From: Magallana gigas
Lineage: Eukaryota
Reading direction: 5' to 3'
DNA length: 64,000 bases
Assembly (NCBI RefSeq): GCF_963853765.1
Contig: NC_088855.1
Span: forward strand, 12,090,001-12,154,000
The notes beneath the pieces were generated by a model. It was given only the letters and a program-made list of their open reading frames with translations. It made no database searches and was not told the origin of the DNA. Below are positions 137 through 61,088 of this stretch, piece by piece (within the stretch, counting starts at the first letter, position 1; each line of letters begins with the position of its first letter). A program made the position numbers and the translations under genes.

Positions 137-1830
137 CCGGGAACACTTAAGCTGAAGGGATATTTTTTCCAGCTTTGAAACAGCTTCTGAGCACAGATTA
201 CAGCCATCCCCTTCTAATGCCATGCTGTTCAACAAGACAAAAATGTTGCCCTGAATTTCCACCATTTGTACAGAGGGTGCAGAAAAGGCTTCTTCAAATC
301 TCTTGTGTTTCTGCTCTGTCATCCTGCATTGTACATATTGAGTTCACATTAGCATACAGTGAAATAGAAATTGAATCAATGTCATGCATTCATCACGATA
401 TTAATTGAAACAAGATTTGCTCAATGGTTTGACAATATAAAGTTGGTGCAATCCATGGCAAAATGAATGTACACAAAATTCTATCAGTATGACTTTTATT
501 TTACAAATAAATTTACTTACATGTAATGGAAGCCTACATCATGATTTCCAGTGACTGCATAAGTTTCAACACCAGGTGGTGTTGCAAACATTTGTTTAAA
601 ACGTTTAACATGATAGTTAAACTCTGCTTTTGAACACCATTTCCCTTCATCTAGAAGATCACCTGCAAATATTAATATGAATATAACATTATACAATTAC
701 ATTTATAAAGATTTACACCCAAACTCATTTTGATATTTGAAATAGCATAGAGGAGGATTTGGTGTATTAATACTATGGAACATACAAACTCAATACAAAT
801 TACCTAATATAAAAACTACATCTGGCCTATGTATAGTCATGCTGGTTTGGAAAGACCTTTCCATTTGCCATTCTCTGTAAATACATTACATGCAACAAGT
901 AATGAAACAATAATCCAGCTTTTTACACTCTTTAACATTTTTATTAAGTATGTAAGGTAGACTGACACTGGAATGCTTAGTCCATATAAAAAATGATCTG
1001 ATATTTCATGCAATATGTATCAGATTATCTTTTATAACTTGCCAAAGAAAGACAATACTGACAAAAACATATGCTCACTTTTGTATAAAATTATGTACTA
1101 ATGATATCAACAATATAGCAACATGATAGTAATAGCAATTATTAATATCAATACAAAAACAATGATATCAACATGAAGGCATATAAGGCCTTGGAGCATG
1201 AAAATATTTTTCAGCTAATAGATAAGCAAATCCACCTTCCTTTTGTTACAAACTATTATACATACTACATCTGGTACCAGGATATGTGATACCATGAACT
1301 CTAAACTCAACATGTTTTATGATACTGTTATACTGAATCAATACCCATAGGATAATGTTGATTTCAGCTTAGAAAGGGAAATATCTGAGTTGTCTCAATA
1401 ATTTCCGAACAACCCTCGTATGATCTTGAAATTATTGGTTTTTGATACACTTTTCATATAGCTGTGTAAATACCGATATATTGATGGTACAAATTACAAA
1501 ACCATAGAAAGATTAGAGAAATGTAGCCAGTTAACTGTCATTGGCAAATGTTTCCCCATACCTTCTCAGCTTGTCAAACCAGTGTCCTTCTCTCCATCCA
1601 AGTATGTGAGTGTCAGCTATTATCATAACTTTCAGCGGGTTTGATTTTGACGGAGCTTGTAGAGTATCCACGTCTAATATTGGCCATTTGCAGAATAACA
1701 AAACAATGAAGTAATGGAAAAATTCACAGTAAAGCAACAAACAAATGAATAAAAAGAAAAAGCGAAAAAGTCTTCGGGTTCGCAAAAGGAAACAGAATAG
1801 TTCTGGTATCTGAACAATAATCCAACCCAT
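137..1830 (-). CDS. MPPE1: Metallophosphoesterase 1 / PGAP5 (GPI remodelling), 5' part; gene continues beyond the left edge
   Basis: Exons 1830-1562, 874-804, 662-521, 323-137, all GT-AG and phase-consistent. Translation has an N-terminal hydrophobic segment, then ADTHILG...WFDKLRREWQMERSFQT...VFILGDLLDEGKW...GNHDVGFHY...VLLNSMALEGDGC, the calcineurin-like metallophosphoesterase motifs of MPPE1. Confidence 0.93.
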
Positions 1831-2345
1831 GGCTACATATTGATTAAAAGAAACATTTGAGTCTTGATGAAATATCGTTGCATAAAGAATGAACTGACGA
1901 AAAGATGTGGCTACATTCAGTTCTATTTATTGTCTGCAGGGTTACTCCATAAATTTTCTCAAGATGTGCTATATGTTTGTGTTTGTCCGTGCTACATAGA
2001 GTTCGATTTTTCTCATTCCTGATCACCGGTATTCTAAAATGATGATTGCAACGGCAGAATCTCAAACCAGGGACGTATATACGTCTCTGCTCAAACAAAT
2101 CAAAACTGACAAAAGTCTGAAAAGAAACCAATGGAGGCTGCCATGTTGGATAAAATATACAAGTCAATCATGTTGGGTTTATGTTCCGGACAATTATTGT
2201 AAACGTTTAAATTTTGTCATTTATGTATCATTCTTTGCAAAATTCAATTATTTAATTTCAATTATAAATGTCCTGTTTATGACATTATTTTAATGTCGAT
2301 TTTTTGTAGCCTACGCGGTAGAATATGTTCGATTTTTAGTCATTC

Positions 2346-2353
2346 ACTTCCGG
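2346..2353. promoter_or_regulatory. ETS-type motif ACTTCCGG in the divergent MPPE1/MATCAP interval
   Basis: Exact ETS/GABP core between two divergently oriented genes. Confidence 0.4.
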
Positions 2354-5132
2354 GTTATTGCCAGGGTTAAGCGTCATGGGGGATATACTGATATAGCCTA
2401 CTTTGCAGGTTTTCAAGTGTAGTGTATTCATGTCTTCAAATACTGCAAGGTTAGATGAATTGTCATTGAGTTTATGTTTATATTTAGCAATTAAATCATC
2501 TGTTGTCGTCTAATTACAATAATGTTGATGTGATAAAGTTATTCTTCTTTTCCTCAACATGCTCAATATTATCATAAAAACTGCATATATTTTCCTTTTT
2601 TATAGAGATCAATTCTGGTACTACTTTAACACACAATTTTCTTTGTATCGGAACTTTGAATTCATTTATTTGGAAATTCATTTATACAAATGATATCACA
2701 ATTACCGTTTTAAAAATGAACTGTTTAATATCGCTTTTAACCCCCCCCCCCCCCTTTAAAAAAATGTGTATAGAAGTTTCTTCCATATTTTCAAAAGGAA
2801 AGACAATCATACTTTATTTCTATTTTCGAAACATATTTGTATAGCAAGCAAGCCTCTATAGTTTTCACCTTAATTATTAGGACTAATTTAAGGTGCTAGA
2901 ATGTTAACCTTTCGTAAAGGATTAATCCATTCTATTGTCACAAACTTTTTAAATAGAATGCAATGCTATTAGTGTGATTGTTAATGCTTTGCAAAGTTGT
3001 ACAGAATATCATGAAGTAAGATTACAAATCAATCTATTATGTCAGTGATAAAAATCTTAATTGATTTTATGCAATCACTTCACAACTTTGCTTATATATT
3101 TATCTCTAGTATGATGATGACATGGTGGAGGTGTGCTTGAAATATTTTGCATAGGTTGATGATCATGCATATTCTTATTAAATCGTAAATGTCATTAATG
3201 AATTAATTGATTTTAAGATAATGAGTAACTTAGTTATGGTGTTATATGGGACACCTCCATATTTTGATGTGTTTCCGATGGAAATTAAAAAAAACAATAA
3301 AAATCAAGAATGATTATATAATTAAAGTTTCTTCTTTCCTGAAATCCTTACCTAATAGCATAGCGCAGTGGGTGAGGGCATTACAAACAGATCTGTCAGT
3401 CAAATCCAGCTGGTGCTTTTCAATTTTTACCTTTATAAAATTTTAACATATTTTAATTTGATATTGTTTACTTTTATCCACATTAATATTGTCAAGTGTC
3501 CCATACTACCTTAAGCAACTTTTCAACAAGAAAATCTAGTATATAGTAAAAGGATGATGACTATACATGTATATATAGTCTGTCCCAAGTTATTGCCTCC
3601 ATCATTTTTTGATAATTTAATAGAATTACACATACCTTTGAAAGATATATTATTCTTCACTCATAAAAGTTCATAGGAACAAAGACAAATTTCTTACGAA
3701 GATTTATAACGGAATATGTTTACATACTTTCTATATTCCGAAATCTCTTGGAGTACCTCGTACAATTTTTCAAACTTTTACCAGTATTTCATGGCTGATG
3801 CAAAACAAAATCCCCGTAGACTTTCTATTTTTGGATGTGTATTGAAAGCTGAAGCAGTAAGGGGAGGGGGCATTTCAAAACAGATAATCTGGACATTTTT
3901 TATATTAGTGGATGAACGTAGTTTGAGCACAAAGGTATTAATGATTATCAAAATATAATCAAGCGAAAAATGGAGGAAGTAAAAACTCAGGACAGAGTGT
4001 AGTACATATATGATATTCCATACATTCCTGATAGCAGACTTATAGATGCAAGGACATAACTGTGAGATTGATTGAGGTTGTTTTACAAGTGATTTTGGGG
4101 AAATGCACATGGATGTAAATTAATACAGTTGGGTGTATTTTCTTGGCATTTTTAAGGCATATTCAGTGCATATATTTCTTCTATAAACTAATGAATTTTA
4201 GTAGAATGAGTAAATATGTAGGATCCAAATAATATATGTATATATTAATATATGTATATAATATATCCAAATATGCAGGATCCAACAGTCAATTTATTTA
4301 TCCATTTATAATGCCATGTATGGGGGGATTGTCTGATTGAAAAAAAGAGCCTATAACAATGTTTCTTCTTTTTTATAAAGAGCAAATATCACCTTGAACC
4401 AAATACAATCGTTACCCTTTCATTAGTATTTCTTCAAACTCTGATTTTAAGAAATTACTTCTTCATTGAATAAGAAGTCTAGAAATGAATTTAAATACTG
4501 TAGATTTAAAATCCTTTGTTAATTTAACTACCGAAAATGTAGAAGTAAGTAAATAAGCCTAGAGTATTCATTATTACTGTTATGTAAACACAACAGATTT
4601 TCTGAAATACAAGCTACTAACTGTTGTTATATAAATAAATCATTATTTTGAAACTATTTGATTAACTATATCAACTAAGATGCCTTTGATTTGTACATAC
4701 AAAAACATGTACTAGTAAAGCTTTCCATTAGGTCTTTTATTGAAGTGCATTCTAAGTGGCGCCCTAGTAAATATTTAAATAGAAATTTACTATCAATAAA
4801 AGTTTGGATTTTATTCAATTTCAACTTGACTGTATCCCCATAACAGTGGCAACACAAGCTGAAGAAGTCGTGTTTCTAATGTTTTATTGATCATGTTGAT
4901 TGTAAATCAAATTCAATTACGGTACATGTGTCTCTATATCCAGATTCCTTTAAAATCAATATGCAGCAGTGTATATCAATTTATATATCATTATGTTTTA
5001 TATCTTTCAGGATTTTAGTGAAAGAAAATTACTGGAATTAAAGGTAAAAATCCTGGATATGACGTGTCTTGCAGAAAAAAGTGTGGAAAATTGACAAGTG
5101 ATTTGAAGATTGTTTTATCAAATTCCTGAAAA

Positions 5133-12625: not shown

Positions 12626-12770
12626 CCAAATTCACAAAAATGAGCTAAACATAGTTTCACAGTCAACTGTAGTTTACGGATCGTAAACTATAGTTATACC
12701 GACGTTAATCTATATTTCACGCGATAATCTATGTTTCACATCTGTAAACTATAGTTAACACTGAAAACAA
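12626..12770. repeat. Fragment of a dispersed repeat with AAACTATAGTT motifs
   Basis: CGCCA(A/C)ATTCACAAAAA(A)TGAGCTAAA...CATAGTTTCACAGT recurs near 56915-56960 with the same AAACTATAGTT motifs. Confidence 0.6.
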
Positions 12771-12811
12771 TCATAGAAAATACACCAGACTTCTTTCAAA
12801 TTTTTAGCATG

Positions 12812-12817
12812 TTTATT
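12812..12817 (-). terminator. Candidate polyadenylation signal (AATAAA) of MsrA
   Basis: TTTATT on the plus strand, ~86 nt downstream of the SECIS in transcript direction. Confidence 0.5.
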
Positions 12818-12902
12818 TGAACTAATTAAATTATTTTTTAAACACAAATTATATGTATATCATGCAGTTCAAAATTTTTTATATTTGTGTACAGAAATCC
12901 AG

Positions 12903-12975
12903 TTCTTTTTAAAACCATCATTTTCTTGAAGGATGAAAACATCTACCTTTTATCAAGAAAAATCATCAGAAAGAA
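12903..12975 (-). promoter_or_regulatory. Type II SECIS element in the MsrA 3' UTR
   Basis: Minus strand: UUCUUU-CUG-A-UGAU-UUUUCUUGA-U-AAAA-GGUA-GAUG-UUUU-CAUC-CU-UCAAGAAAA-UGAU-GGUUUUAA-AAAGAA. It has an AUGA core, 11 nt to the AA run, a perfect 9-bp helix II, a GAUG/CAUC apical mini-stem, 3' UGAU completing the quartet and a 6-bp helix I. It lies ~155 nt after the TAA stop. Confidence 0.9.
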
Positions 12976-13129
12976 ACGAAATTTGATCTACACAAGCATG
13001 AAAAACATTAAAACTGTATCACAGAAATATATCACCTGATTAAAAACTACAGGGGTGGAAAAAGTGGAATAAAAGAATATCACAAACAAAACAGTCAACA
13101 TATGATGAGAACTTCTCAGGTAGAATTTA

Positions 13130-15836
13130 TTAGAAATGTGGAGCTTTCTTCAGCTGCTGTTCAACGTAACCAAGTTGTTTTCTAGTCAGTGACATACCCT
13201 CTGTGTCCTGAAATTGTATTGCAGAATATATATGTCAGGCAAAAAATAAACATTTTTGTTCAATTCTATAACTTCAATAAATAGTATATTATTTATTTTG
13301 AAACAAGACATCACAGAGATGGTGATTATTTTGTAAAGTAAAATTAGGATGAAAGGGACAGGTATTGGACCATGCCTTGACCTTAACTTGACCTCAAAAT
13401 TAGTTCAAAAGTCACTGCAAATATTCTTCTCATGGGCATTTTTTGTCTTAGGTATAAACCAGATAAGATAATTGAAAAAATATGTGGTCAGGACAAGAAG
13501 TTTGCAACAAAATCAGCCAACCCCTTGACTCCAGGCTCAGAAACTTAAATTGTTCAAATTCACTGCCTATAAACCATAAATTCAAATAAGACCAAGTGGA
13601 GAGAATATAGGCTTCAAACACCCGGCCCAAATTTTGTAGAGTCCTGCAATGACATTGATCTCTGATCTTGAAACATGCACCTATTTACCTATAAACCGTA
13701 AATTCAAATAAGGCCAAGGGGAGAGAATAAAGGCTTCAAACACCCGGCCCAAATTTTGTAGAGTCTTGCAATGATATTGATCTCTGATCTTGAAACATGT
13801 ATCTAGGTCATAGTACATACTCCACCATTTTCAATCATAGAGATCATAGAGATGTTCTGACTTCAAATCTTGGTTCAAAGTCAATGCACACCCTTAAAAA
13901 TTGTCAGTAATCTTTGACAATGTCATTTGATACAGAAAATTTGTTTGAGGTTGCTGCACACCCCTTTACATGAAGAAAATCTGTGGGTGAAGTTCAAGTA
14001 AAATAAAACAGGAGAAGAATGAACTCTGCACAAGAGGTATCAGACATCTCAACAATGGCATGAGGCATACTCCCTATAGTCCTCTGTGTCTCCGCAGAAA
14101 GAGTTGGTACATCGAAAGTTTGAGCCATGAGGGAGATAATAATCATAGTGATTACGTTTTCCTATCAAACTTTACTTAAAAAACTATTAAATATTTAATT
14201 CCTATGTGTACATGTATTATAATTATCTCTTTAATGAACAATTCATATACAATGTCTTAAGACTCATCCACCGGGTATCGCTTTAAGTCAGCCTAAAGTA
14301 GGCAAATGTATATTTTCAACTTCCATTTCATAAAAATGATAGACAATCCAGTTGTTACCTTTAGGAAATCTTCATAGTCTCCATAGCCCCCGAGATACCC
14401 ATTCAACTTGCAAGCTAGTGCAGAGGAGATGATTTCTTCATCTGATAGGTTCAAAGTGTCCAAAATATCCCTATGCTGTCTCAGAATGTATTTTTGGTGG
14501 TAACTGTTCAAAAGAAAATTTGGTGATATCAATGCGAGGAAGGTATATATTGTCTTTTTTAAATGACAAAAGATGCAAACTTTCTGTGCATGTTATAAAT
14601 TTTCCAAATGGCATCAATATTTTCTACAATGACATGAATTCAATACATGGATTAAAATAAATCACTGCTTTTTTGATATCACATGTAACTAATTCATTAA
14701 TGGGAAAGAAATGTCCTAGTATAAAAAAGGCTGATTGATACTGATATAGCATATATGTAATTGGAAAAGAGGAATGAGCATATAAATACATTGAAAACTT
14801 ATGCTGGACCGGGAATCGAACCCAGGACCCCTGCAACTCTAAGCAGGAGCTCTACCACTTAGCTATCCAGGCCAATATCCGCTGTCCATATAGCCCCAAC
14901 TACTATACATATATTATGTGTAAAACTGCACTTAATATTACATGAATGATCAAAGATTGACTCACTTTTCAGCATTGTAAAAAGGTCCTGCCTGGACAAT
15001 TTTGGTGACAATGGGGGATACATGGTTTTTCTGTTGTTCCTCTCGAGTCTGCTCAGCCAGCATTTTCTGTTTGGTACTGTGATAGAAGATGGCTGACATA
15101 TACTGAGTGCCACGCTGGGAACAAGGATTGTGACTTTTCCAGAACTTGTTTAACAGTTCCTCATAAGAAACAACACTTGGGTCAAATTCCAGGTCCACAG
15201 TTTCTGTATGATCCCCTCTAGAAATCACCAAATAAAGATCAATTATGCTTGGCAGAGACATATGTAACATAGTATATATATAGTATATATGCATCCCTGA
15301 TGCTTGGTCACCTTAAACCAAATTATTTAAATCTCAAAATTTTCATTACTTAGATTTTTTTTATTATTACAGGTGCTTCCTTGAGGTGGACATTTAACAT
15401 TAAATAAATCAATGTAATGAATTTTACATTGTTCTGTTAATACATGTACTGTTAAATATGTAAATGACCTCTGACCCTGGTCCAATGCCCAACTGGAACT
15501 CCAGAGTGGTCAGTCCAGTCTCTACCACGTACCTGTTCACATCTACCTGTTCTTGTCTTGTCTTTGTACTATGTATCATGCATGTTCCATATACAACTTA
15601 AGGTAAGGATTATTGCCTTATTTATTACATGTACCATGTTTACAAAGTATCGGTTATACAATAACAATTATAGCTTACATGGTGCGATAAGTAGGATTCT
15701 GGGTGGTTCCCCCACTGAATCCCACTCTAGTTTTCAGAACACCACGGAGAGCTCCAAACTGGGACTCTGGGAACCAAAATCAGCTGAGGGCGAAAGTCGC
15801 TCTTGACAATCTGCCAATATCTGATCCTCCAGGCAT
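13130..15836 (-). CDS. MSRA: Selenocysteine-containing peptide methionine-S-sulfoxide reductase (Sec-MsrA), ~210 aa
   Basis: Exons 15836-15679, 15217-14966, 14503-14359, 13207-13130 (633 nt, GT-AG, phase-consistent). Protein: MPGGSDIGRLSRATFALS-U-FWFPESQFGALRGVLKTRVGFSGGTTQNPTYRTIGDHTETVDLEFDP...QYMSAIFYH...FYNAENYHQKY...KAPHF*. The in-frame TGA is codon 19, in the GCFW-equivalent motif. Confidence 0.93.
13301..14105. mobile_element. Helentron/HINE-like non-autonomous element with internal ~122-bp tandem repeat, in the last MsrA intron
   Basis: Starts AAACAAGA, has TGACCTT-type motifs and a two-copy repeat at 13566-13799 (period 122). Family assignment is by recalled resemblance to bivalve Helentron derivatives. 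Confidence 0.45.
14802..14873 (-). mobile_element. tRNA-derived SINE-like head in MsrA intron 2
   Basis: GGCCTGGATAGCTAAGTGGTAGAGC...GGTTCGATTCCCGG contains Pol III A and B boxes and a T arm, but has an 8-nt anticodon loop and only 5/7 acceptor pairs. Confidence 0.65.
15780..15782 (-). other. In-frame UGA, predicted selenocysteine codon (MsrA catalytic residue)
   Basis: Minus strand reads GCC CTC AGC TGA TTT TGG TTC CCA GAG. MsrA homology continues on both sides in the same frame (ATFA upstream; FW..E, TRVGFSGG and PTY downstream). Confidence 0.9.
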
Positions 15837-16087
15837 CTTTTTTTTTTCCCTTGGGACTGTACTATAAAGATTAAAACTTGATCAATGAAAATATATATTC
15901 TCACTCTCTATATATAATGTATAAGTATAAAAATGTACTTATATGCGCAAAGCTGTAATTCACGCATAAATCGTGTATTTTATAAAGATCTTACCAAATC
16001 AAAACTGACTCGAGCTCTATCTGCAATCCGACCGTGTTGTGTAATGTAAGATAAAGCGAAAGTACATTCGGAACAAAGTTTAGCTAT

Positions 16088-16257: not shown

Positions 16258-17910
16258 ATGAGGAAAATGCTGCCAGGTTTTGGTGTCGTGGGAACTCCAA
16301 ATTCGGTCAGGGCGTATGTCCCACTTTTGAGATCATACGGTTTTAAAGTTGTAGCTCTTTGGGGCAGAACTAAAGAAGATGCTGCAAAAGTTGCAGCGGA
16401 ACTCAACATTCCTTTTCATTCCAGCAATGTTGATGAGGTAAACAATCTTTTTTATGGTATAGTATAATCAGATCAAGTTGCGCATATGCTTGAAATCACC
16501 AGATCACAGTAACCTTTTAGTTTCTGATTTTATTTTTTATCACTGCTGATCAGGGGTTTTCTTTAAACTTTATTGGTGAACCTTTTATTTACTACTGATC
16601 TAATAATAAGGAAAAAACATATTACAAGCAATAAATGCTTGAATAATACTTTGAAATGACCGTTTTTATTGGAGGGGGTATATGGACATAAAGAAACCCT
16701 ATTTTTGTCATTTAATACTTCTGTTTAGAGCTTAATGTGATTAACAGTGATCAACTTTGAATCATTTCAGGTCTTGCTAAACAAAGATGTTGATATTGTT
16801 GCAGTGACGTGTGCTCCACATATGCAAGCTCCCATTGCAGTCAAAGCCCTTGGTATGCAAATACATGTAATTCAGTTTCAGACAAGCATATATAATAGAT
16901 ACGCATCATATTTTAAATACAGACTTCCCATCAAAAATGTATTATGTCTATGATCTTTTAAGATTTATTTTTATTTTTTTATAGGTATAGGTAAACATGT
17001 TATCTGTGGTGCGCCAGCAGGGCCAAACCAAGTGGACTCCCTCCGCATGGTCAATGCAGCCAGATACTACCCACGACTGATGTCCCTGACAATCTACGGA
17101 CTGCGATTCCTGCCTGCTATTGACAAAATGAGGCAGCTGATTGTGGATGGCTATGTAGGAGACATAAGTATTTGTGAGGTCAAAGTTCACTTTGAAAAAA
17201 TTAAAAGAGATCAGTTTGATTGGATGTGTGATGGCACCATGGGAGGCGGTCTTTTGAATGAGATTGGCAGCGATATCATAGATGTGATTGGTTATCTAAC
17301 AGGACAGAAGGCAACAAAAGCACATGGCATGCTGAAAACATACACAAAGCAGACTGAGAAAATAAAAGGAATTCGAGAGATAACAAGTGATGATTTTTGT
17401 ACTTTCCAAATAGAACTTGACCAGGGGTCCTGTGTAACTGCAACAATCAATGGTCATATTGCAGGGCCATTTCAACAAGAGATAATGGTTATTGGGAATA
17501 AAGGCAGACTGACTGTCAAAGGAGCTGATCTGTATGGGCAAAAAAATGACCAATCAAAAGAAGAGTTGTTGCACTTTGACCCTATAAACTTTAAAGAGGA
17601 GGAGCGACATGGAGTGTCTGAAAAAACACGCACTTTTATTCCTACTCCCTACCTAAAGGGAATTATAAAGTTCATCGAAGCCGTAAAAGATGCATTTGAC
17701 AAAGAAGAAGAAAGACAGAGCTACTGCACCGACCCAGTAAGACCTGCAGCGTCATTCGAAGATGCTCTCTATGTGCAGTCTGTGGTTGAAGCCATCCGCA
17801 AGTCCAGTAAAACCAAACAGTGGATCAAGGTGGAAGTTTTACAGGAAGAGCCTGATCCCAACAACTTTATGTCGCCTTCTCTCCGACGTAGCGCTTACAC
17901 AGTTCAATGA
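16258..17910 (+). CDS. GFOD1: Glucose-fructose oxidoreductase domain-containing protein (GFOD1/2-like), ~395 aa
   Basis: Exons 16258-16437, 16771-16852, 16985-17910 (1188 nt, in phase). MLPGFGVVGT...GFKVVALWGRT...ALGIGKHVIC...AARYYPRLMS...GGGLLNEIGSDIID...SDDFCTFQIEL matches the GFOD (Gfo/Idh/MocA) family. GFOD1 vs GFOD2 orthology is not resolvable. Confidence 0.92.
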
Positions 17911-60082: not shown

Positions 60083-61088
60083 ATGAAATATATCAGAAAG
60101 GACAGTAGGACAAGGGATGATAAGACTAGAAAAGTAATATATGTGGAAGAAACTGTACCCTTCTACAACCTGGGTGATTCTCGGCGTTTCTTTGCGGTTT
60201 CAAGAGCAACATTTGAATGTATATGTAGAAATATAGCCCACTTTCAAGAGTTACAACCTGGTTGGACCGAAGGAAGATAATTTATTTCAATAGATAAACA
60301 TTTGTGAATTACCCCATGTTATTTAGCAACCCAAGACAGCATTCACAACATATCTGATTCAATGTCACTGAGTCCTCTAAAATCAGATGTCGCACAAGAA
60401 TCAAAGACATTTTTGTTAATAATCTTATGAAAGTCACGAAGTAATGGACAAGTTTGAGCAAAAACAAAATTTTTCCAAATGTATTCGGTGCTACAGGTGG
60501 TACCCATATTGCCATAAAAGCCCCTAAAATCATTCAGAAACTTATGTCAACAAAAAGGGTTTTCTCTCAATTTTAATTTTAAATCTTGCAAGGACTCAGA
60601 GAGGTATTTAGATTTGTCGTGATGGTCAGGAAAGCTGCAACAATGCCAAGGTGTTGAAAAATACAGATATATGGGGAAATGGTTTGAGAGTTTGTGGCAA
60701 TGGGCATTTTCTTAGAAATGATCCTTATACATTGAGAAGTTGACTTCTTACTCCCTATGGTGACACAGGACGTCTGACACCTCAACAAAGGAATTCAAAA
60801 TTTCGTCATTCAGGCACAAATGTAGCAATAGAACGAGCATCTGGGTGTCTGAAAGGACGTTTCAGAGAATAACGATATTTGGAAACTTCAGAACTAAAAA
60901 CGTCTGTTGAGGTCTTTATTTTATGTCGCATTATTCATAATGACATTATATGCATCCTGAACAATGAAGATGTGCAAGAGTATTTTGAAGACAACCAGCC
61001 AGGACTTAATGTGCCCCACAGAAATTTAGTAGACATTCAGGCAGAAGGACTAAGGAAACGTGATTACATTGCTCTGCATTTACCTTAG
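60083..61088 (+). pseudogene. Decayed PIF/Harbinger DDE transposase (HARBI1-like)
   Basis: FPNVFGATGGTHIAIKAP (60472-60525; DGTH motif mutated to GGTH), TYVNKKGF, LLTPYGDTGRLTPQQRN and IERASGCLKGRF (60828-60863), with many stops and frameshifts. Confidence 0.85.

Follow-up and report, generated by a model that had tools for sequence, protein, structure and literature searches.

Does a gene whose catalytic codon reads as a stop still make an enzyme? The question is raised by a 64,000-nt stretch of the oyster Magallana gigas genome (contig NC_088855.1, positions 12,090,001 to 12,154,000; hereafter the window, with coordinates counted from its first letter), where the minus strand carries the exons of a methionine sulfoxide reductase A (MsrA) and the first coding exon contains an in-frame TGA. 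We conclude, with a probability of roughly 0.94, that the locus encodes a two-domain methionine-S-sulfoxide reductase A with a selenocysteine (Sec) nucleophile, UGA codon 19 being recoded through a selenocysteine insertion sequence (SECIS) within the 3′ untranslated region (3′UTR). Part of this reading, and held at the same strength, is that the locus, which RNA shows to be expressed, is a functional five-exon gene, with 1 non-coding and 4 coding exons, which runs on the minus strand from about 16052 to 12806.

The reverse complement of 15679-15836 translates to MPGGSDIGRLSRATFALS*FWFPESQFGALRGVLKTRVGFSGGTTQNPTYRT, the single stop being the TGA at 15782-15780, and the exon ends at 15679 on the donor edge AT|gtaagc in phase 2. 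The original prediction, made from the DNA letters, had identified this exon, its read-through peptide and a Sec at residue 19, and coordinates, peptide and residue number all proved correct on translation. The transcript was followed by mapping the reads of two poly(A) RNA-seq runs, along with two run-contig sets, to 12700-16000, which yielded the following gene model.

15995-16052, minus strand: non-coding 5′ exon, its 5′ end approximate, joined by splicing to 15861; contig letters beyond 15862 map to 16025-15996.
15679-15861, minus strand: first coding exon, with 25 nt of 5′UTR, the ATG at 15836-15834, and 52 codons plus 2 nt; covered by contigs X12 and X1.
15780-15782, minus strand: in-frame TGA, the predicted Sec codon, residue 19, at the catalytic position; unchanged in RNA contigs and conserved in relatives.
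14966-15217, minus strand: coding exon 2, the PMSR core GDHTETV...FYNAE (Pfam PMSR, 78.5 bits); junctions present in RNA.
14359-14503, minus strand: coding exon 3, the YHQKY motif and the start of the helical domain (PF20939, 28.4 bits); junctions present in RNA.
13130-13207, minus strand: coding part of the last exon, DTEGMSLTRKQLGYVEQQLKKAPHF, with the stop TAA at 13132-13130; junction present in RNA, and the C-terminus matches the Crassostrea virginica protein.
12806-13129, minus strand: 3′UTR of ~325 nt with AATAAA at 12817-12812; contig X12 record 8 ends at 12806.
12918-12966, minus strand: putative SECIS element, from a pattern scan with shuffle control; kept in C. virginica.

The three coding junctions are all GT..AG on the minus strand: 15679|15217 is crossed by 4 raw reads and 2 contigs, 14966|14503 by 2 contigs, and 14359|13207 by 6 raw reads and 2 contigs. 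A single 1039-nt transcript contig (X12 record 8, depth 75) links 15862-15679, 15217-14966, 14503-14358 and 13206-12806, and nearly all raw exonic reads share one orientation, the pattern that a stranded library should give for a minus-strand RNA. The splicing in phase into three further MsrA exons that had been proposed thus agrees with the RNA. The last coding exon (13207) does not adjoin exon 3 and lies 1.15 kb downstream of it. A nearer last exon at 14292-14257, with a good acceptor and an open frame (...ADLKRYPVDES*), was rejected because no RNA junction leads to it, all reads and contigs joining 14359 to 13207. At the other end of the gene, the contigs run past 15862 in the 5′ direction, their further letters mapping to 16025-15996, which reveals a short non-coding leader exon with the donor GTAAG past 15995 and the acceptor AG at 15863-15862. 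In none of its frames does the leader contain an ATG; the mRNA's first AUG is the one at 15836. The predicted product has 210 residues, with U at position 19, a PMSR catalytic domain and a PF20939 helical domain. Compared with the assembly, the transcript contigs of both species labels have 1 base less in the A-run at 15837-15848 of the 5′UTR, either a length polymorphism or a homopolymer error.

The position of the TGA can be read from the family profile. The 33 residues that follow it match positions 9-40 of the Pfam PMSR profile (32.1 bits, E 1.7e-07), which places the TGA at profile position 8, just before the FW of the G-C-F-W motif. In the alignment this column is Cys in 7/7 Cys-type homologues, FW stands directly after the TGA, and both flanks are conserved, ATFA..S upstream and FWFPE downstream, so that the UGA does occupy the place of the catalytic Cys in the MsrA GCFW motif, as had been claimed. 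The codon is also what the mRNA carries. Contigs X12 (depth 75) and X1 (depth 238), from two runs with two species labels, cover 15679-15862, and they differ from the assembly only by a synonymous change at 15810 (AGA to AGG, codon 9) and by a 1-nt change in poly-A length at 15838.

The strongest test comes from C. virginica, whose genome also has TGA at this codon, with ATG...AGC TGA TTT TGG at the orthologous place. Of the 18 codons before the TGA, the window and C. virginica have 3 in identical form; another 12 show synonymous differences only and the remaining 3 alter the residue, while intron 1 gives no BLAST alignment at all between the two. Mostly synonymous change beside an intron that cannot be aligned indicates that the frame before the UGA is translated and under selection, unlike a 5′UTR or a dead gene. 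The RefSeq protein of C. virginica, annotated as 'peptide methionine sulfoxide reductase-like' and 177 amino acids long, is 87.6% identical to residues 34-210 of the window protein; its model starts at an internal Met 15 codons past the UGA and is therefore without the catalytic residue. In the window protein a Lys (LKTRVGF) occupies the position of that Met, so that a downstream start of the RefSeq type is not available, and no in-frame Met follows until residue 93, which already belongs to the catalytic domain. Conservation upstream of the UGA and a TGA/TGC exchange in another mollusc had been named in advance as tests, as had reads with TGC or TGT at the codon: the first gave the codon pattern above, the second gave TGA again, and the contigs from both runs keep the TGA. 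The suspicion that automated annotation would mis-start or truncate such a gene was likewise justified, in the sister species by the 177-residue model beginning after the UGA and more widely by 'partial' RefSeq models, of which those of Amphimedon and Lytechinus start at FWFPEAQ and that of Acanthaster one residue later.

Exon 2, used as query in an exhaustive protein search, returned homologues of two kinds. Many begin just past the Sec position or further in (one exactly at FWFPEG), and the full-length ones have Cys at the aligned position, as in ATFALGCFWGP and ATFAMACFWAP. We compared the DNA of eight homologue loci, and in 7/8 of them (L001, L002, L003, L015, L017, L019 and L021, from unidentified or distant species) an in-frame TGA stands at the exact codon between conserved flanks; the eighth, L004, was examined for SECIS alone. 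The first of these reads KATFGMS-TGA-FWFPEG and has the same phase-2 intron right after ...NPTY..(M/T); from its accession we take it to be Capitella, and it appears to be the Capitella gene listed by the Jiang and Chipman authors considered below. About 29 database proteins derived from metagenomes or transcriptomes, including P0307, P0310-P0312 and P0317, have Trp in the catalytic place (..MSWFWFPE..). The codon is TGA and not TGG in the one Trp-form protein that was checked (L021 111-818), whose W therefore comes from a gene caller that used a TGA=Trp code.

A candidate SECIS element lies in the transcribed 3′UTR, on the minus strand, and reads 12966 AUGA-U-UUUUCUUGA-UAAAA-GGUAGAUGUUUUCAUCC-U-UCAAGAAAA-U-GA-U 12918. 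Its parts are the AUGA/GA core, a 9-bp helix II with perfect pairing (UUUUCUUGA/UCAAGAAAA), unpaired A's 11 nt past the core, and a mini-stem, which would make it type II. Rules for helix I and II that were set too tightly left a strict first scan without a match; a looser scan and a formal pattern found the element. In a scan of the 5 kb downstream, made before the true 3′UTR was known, it ranked best by folding energy per nucleotide, and the RNA then placed it 163 nt into the transcribed ~325-nt 3′UTR. Over the whole window and both strands, the formal pattern has 2 matches in the real sequence against 2.75 per dinucleotide shuffle; 2.75 matches per 128 kb of shuffles correspond to ~0.007 expected by chance in a 325-nt UTR. 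The other match, at 60773-60809 on the minus strand, has an 8-9 bp helix with one mismatch and is probably a chance match, no search having been made for a UGA gene upstream of it. In C. virginica the SECIS is the only alignable segment of the UTR of the last exon: it retains AUGA, UAAAAG and UGAU there, has an apical part shorter by 8 nt, and forms helix II from UUCUCUUGA/UCAAGAGAA in place of UUUUCUUGA/UCAAGAAAA, a compensatory replacement of a U-A by a C-G pair. Canonical SECIS elements were also found in the 3′UTRs of homologues, in L003, L004 and L019 by scan and in L021 by eye.

Several observations speak against a recoded UGA or weaken the case for it. Pattern scans found no clean canonical SECIS in the homologue transcripts L002, L015 and L017, the last of which has an imperfect AUGA..AAA..UGAU candidate at 714. 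No Rfam SECIS model gave a match, whether over the whole window at the gathering threshold or over 2.4 kb and 131 nt at E up to 10. Helix I of the oyster element is weak, with A-U pairs only, and the folding energy of the element is no better than that of shuffles (z = -0.39). On the RNA side, the depth of raw reads over exon 1 is low, ~1x in one run, so that the mRNA evidence for the TGA comes mainly from the assembled contigs. The eukaryotic SECIS model of Rfam was built on vertebrates and fails to detect many elements of invertebrates, and the folding score is uninformative because the sequence of the element is AU-rich. We give the motif, its position and its covariation more weight than the negative results on the SECIS.

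The genome also supplies the means of decoding. Genome-wide searches (564 Mb, 29 contigs) found two tRNA-Sec genes with anticodon TCA by ARAGORN, with an Rfam tRNA-Sec match of 77.3 bits. These genes lie 1.2 kb apart (L011 1501-1587 and 2681-2766; G000 C3: ~53.01 Mb) on the same chromosome as the window, an arrangement that looks like a tandem duplication. A canonical Cys-type MsrA (GMGCFWGAE) is present on another chromosome, and the Sec and Cys forms therefore coexist in this genome. Two PMSR-matching loci, C5:21620965-21621230 and C5:21658179-21658649 (L005-L009), lie 37 kb apart; one of them is the clear GMGCFWGAE exon of a Cys-type MsrA, and the other covers profile positions 66-152 only, with TAG stops within its six-frame match, and may represent either a further copy or a duplicate that has decayed.

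With these results in hand, the other explanations of the TGA can be weighed. The plainest is that the gene is dead, a former Cys-MsrA with a nonsense mutation at its catalytic codon whose transcript makes an 18-residue peptide only. TGA is normally a stop, after all, and the Cys-type enzyme encoded on another chromosome could cover the function, but a decaying gene should not present the same TGA in C. virginica and in seven further loci (one of them taken to be an annelid), nor purifying selection on the codons to both sides of the TGA, nor splicing, expression and a conserved SECIS in its UTR. We consider a pseudogene very improbable, and effectively refuted by the conservation of the TGA across phyla. 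Still smaller is the chance that the true codon is TGC or TGT, hence Cys, and that the TGA is an assembly or sequencing error. A single-base error would give just this picture in one assembly; the independent RNA contigs, however, from two runs and two species labels, report differences elsewhere in the exon and none at 15780-15782, which excludes an assembly error, and the C. virginica genome has the same codon.

The UGA might instead lie in a 5′UTR or a short upstream open reading frame, the protein starting downstream as an N-terminally short, non-catalytic MsrA-like product, just as the C. virginica RefSeq model begins at a Met 15 codons past the UGA. In the window that Met is a Lys, and starting at residue 93 would cost the product its nucleophile and a large part of the catalytic domain; moreover, 12 synonymous-only against 3 residue-changing differences in the 18 codons before the UGA are not expected of a UTR. 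There is accordingly very little room for a downstream start. The idea that a near-cognate tRNA puts a standard amino acid, Trp or Cys, at the UGA would seem to find backing in the ~29 database homologues with W at the catalytic position, but the one W homologue that was checked has TGA, Trp cannot act as the nucleophile, and both a SECIS and tRNA-Sec are present. We give it hardly any weight. Recoding of the UGA as Sec is thus the reading that we carry forward.

Membership of the oyster protein in the MsrA family, and in one particular branch of it, follows from its domains. At a Pfam cut-off of 23.7 bits (PMSR PF01625; PF20939 MsrA_helical), exon 2 matches PMSR with 78.5 bits over profile positions 48-137, and exon 3 alone matches PF20939, 'Selenoprotein methionine sulfoxide reductase A, helical domain', with 28.4 bits. 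Exon 3 also has a weak PDB match to residues 136-177 of CoMsrA, and the last exon aligns with the C-termini of homologues. The best solved structures over exon 2 are 4W8C, 4U66, 4LWJ-M and 7C13, the best match having E 9e-14. Two of these, 4LWJ and 4W8C, are identified as the natively Sec-containing 1-Cys-type MsrA of Clostridium (Alkaliphilus) oremlandii (PMC4333827, PMC4479559). Its C-terminal helical domain is described as distinctive and essential for activity, and its Sec form as 20-fold more active, apparently in relation to the Cys form (PMC4333827), in line with the expectation that Sec raises activity. The oyster protein shares with this enzyme the shortened GDH(T/S)E..DP core, the YHQKY..(A)(K/R)(L/M)NGY helical domain (PF20939), and Sec as the predicted sole catalytic residue. 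The C. oremlandii enzyme differs in being bacterial, in having its SECIS inside the coding region and in having no Cys, whereas the oyster gene has introns, a 3′UTR SECIS and two non-conserved Cys (85 and 168) in its product. Canonical Cys-type MsrAs (GCFWG; E. coli 1FF3, bovine 1FVG, human) belong to the same PMSR fold family and presumably perform the same sulfoxide-reduction chemistry, but have a Cys nucleophile, a longer loop (VCSG.TGHAEVV, against IGDHTETV in the oyster), resolving Cys residues in the C-terminal tail and no helical domain.

Sec-MsrA has been reported from Chlamydomonas, bacteria, a sponge, a placozoan, a cnidarian, an annelid, amphioxus, a centipede, Daphnia and a tick, while vertebrates and insects have Cys-form MsrA only (PMC3473315, PMC4244043), a distribution that agrees with the original prediction of a class present in bacteria, algae and invertebrates and not in vertebrates. 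The founding eukaryotic example is the Sec-MsrA of Chlamydomonas reinhardtii, with a 3′UTR SECIS (PMC4244043, PMC3473315); it and the oyster gene are both eukaryotic with the SECIS in the 3′UTR, and its relation to the animal genes is taken from the literature. Closer are the marine-invertebrate Sec-MsrAs (Jiang et al. 2012, PMC3473315; Chipman et al. 2014, PMC4244043), which are of the same family and share the catalytic UGA and the 3′UTR SECIS. Neither survey covers a bivalve Sec-MsrA, and for Lottia gigantea, the single mollusc that they surveyed, Jiang et al. report no MsrA of any kind (PMC3473315). A Pacific oyster selenoproteome of 32 genes (Baclaocos 2019, as cited in PMC8557442) may already list this gene.

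From these comparisons we infer how the enzyme might be made and might work. UGA codon 19 would be decoded as Sec through the 3′UTR SECIS, the tRNA-Sec of this genome and the standard eukaryotic factors. If the enzyme works like the MsrAs that have been characterised, the selenolate would then attack the sulfoxide of Met-S-O, release Met and form a selenenic acid. This intermediate would probably be resolved by an external thiol system (glutaredoxin/glutathione or thioredoxin), as in the 1-Cys-type C. oremlandii enzyme. The window protein ends in ...KKAPHF, with no Cys in its last 8 residues and its only Cys at the two non-conserved positions 85 and 168, and it is this want of a C-terminal Cys, unlike most Cys-type relatives, that makes external regeneration probable. 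Sec-type Msrs tend to lack a resolving Cys. When homologues whose C-terminus is complete are counted, a Cys falls within the last eight residues of 11 of the 14 Cys forms and of 39 of the 140 others (Fisher p = 3e-4), the others being Sec forms, proteins truncated after Sec or proteins without an identified CFW motif, with a few that are neither clearly Sec nor Cys forms. It is possible, although we lean somewhat against it, that animal two-domain MsrAs come in two flavours, Cys forms with a C-terminal resolving Cys and Sec forms, the oyster's among them, that have lost it and use an external reductant, and that the oyster gene is the first properly modelled mollusc Sec-MsrA. Were this so, the exchange of Sec and Cys would be coupled to a change of regeneration pathway.

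The surroundings of the gene offered some further observations. On the plus strand, 16258-17910 holds a GFOD1-like Gfo/Idh/MocA oxidoreductase gene, head-to-head with MsrA and with the 5′ ends less than ~250 bp apart. This order suggests a shared bidirectional promoter region and is kept in C. virginica (L020, GFO gene at 400-3335, opposite strand). Within intron 2, 14800-14873 (minus strand) is tRNA-like, with an Rfam tRNA score of 40 bits and an ARAGORN call of 'tRNA-???' with a four-base anticodon; its RNA depth is unrelated to that of the MsrA gene and it has loose ends at 14803, which suggests a multi-copy tRNA-derived short interspersed nuclear element (SINE) or a pseudo-tRNA. Past the MsrA poly(A) site, reads at 12700-12775 show joints of the 'opposite strands' and 'goes back' kinds and many loose ends, over repeated ..CTATAGTTTAC.. 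units. This segment looks like a repeated or inverted-repeat element, similar to a miniature inverted-repeat transposable element (MITE) or a satellite, that is transcribed elsewhere in the genome.

The oyster gene is a well-supported member of the already known Sec-MsrA class and involves no new mechanism. Its main value is practical, as gene finders drop or mis-start Sec-MsrA, which is seen in the C. virginica model, in the 'partial' RefSeq models and in the ~29 false-Trp proteins. The corrected model provides a target for proteomics and expression work, namely a protein of 210 amino acids with U19, a SECIS with one compensatory change in its sister species, and ATFALS-U-FWFPESQFGALR as tryptic peptide. 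Through it, a mollusc joins the taxa in which the ancestral Sec-MsrA has been retained, and the oyster is a commercially important, selenium-rich animal. Work on oxidative-stress repair in bivalves, on selenium biology or on selenoprotein evolution that relied on the existing models would miss or misread an active enzyme.

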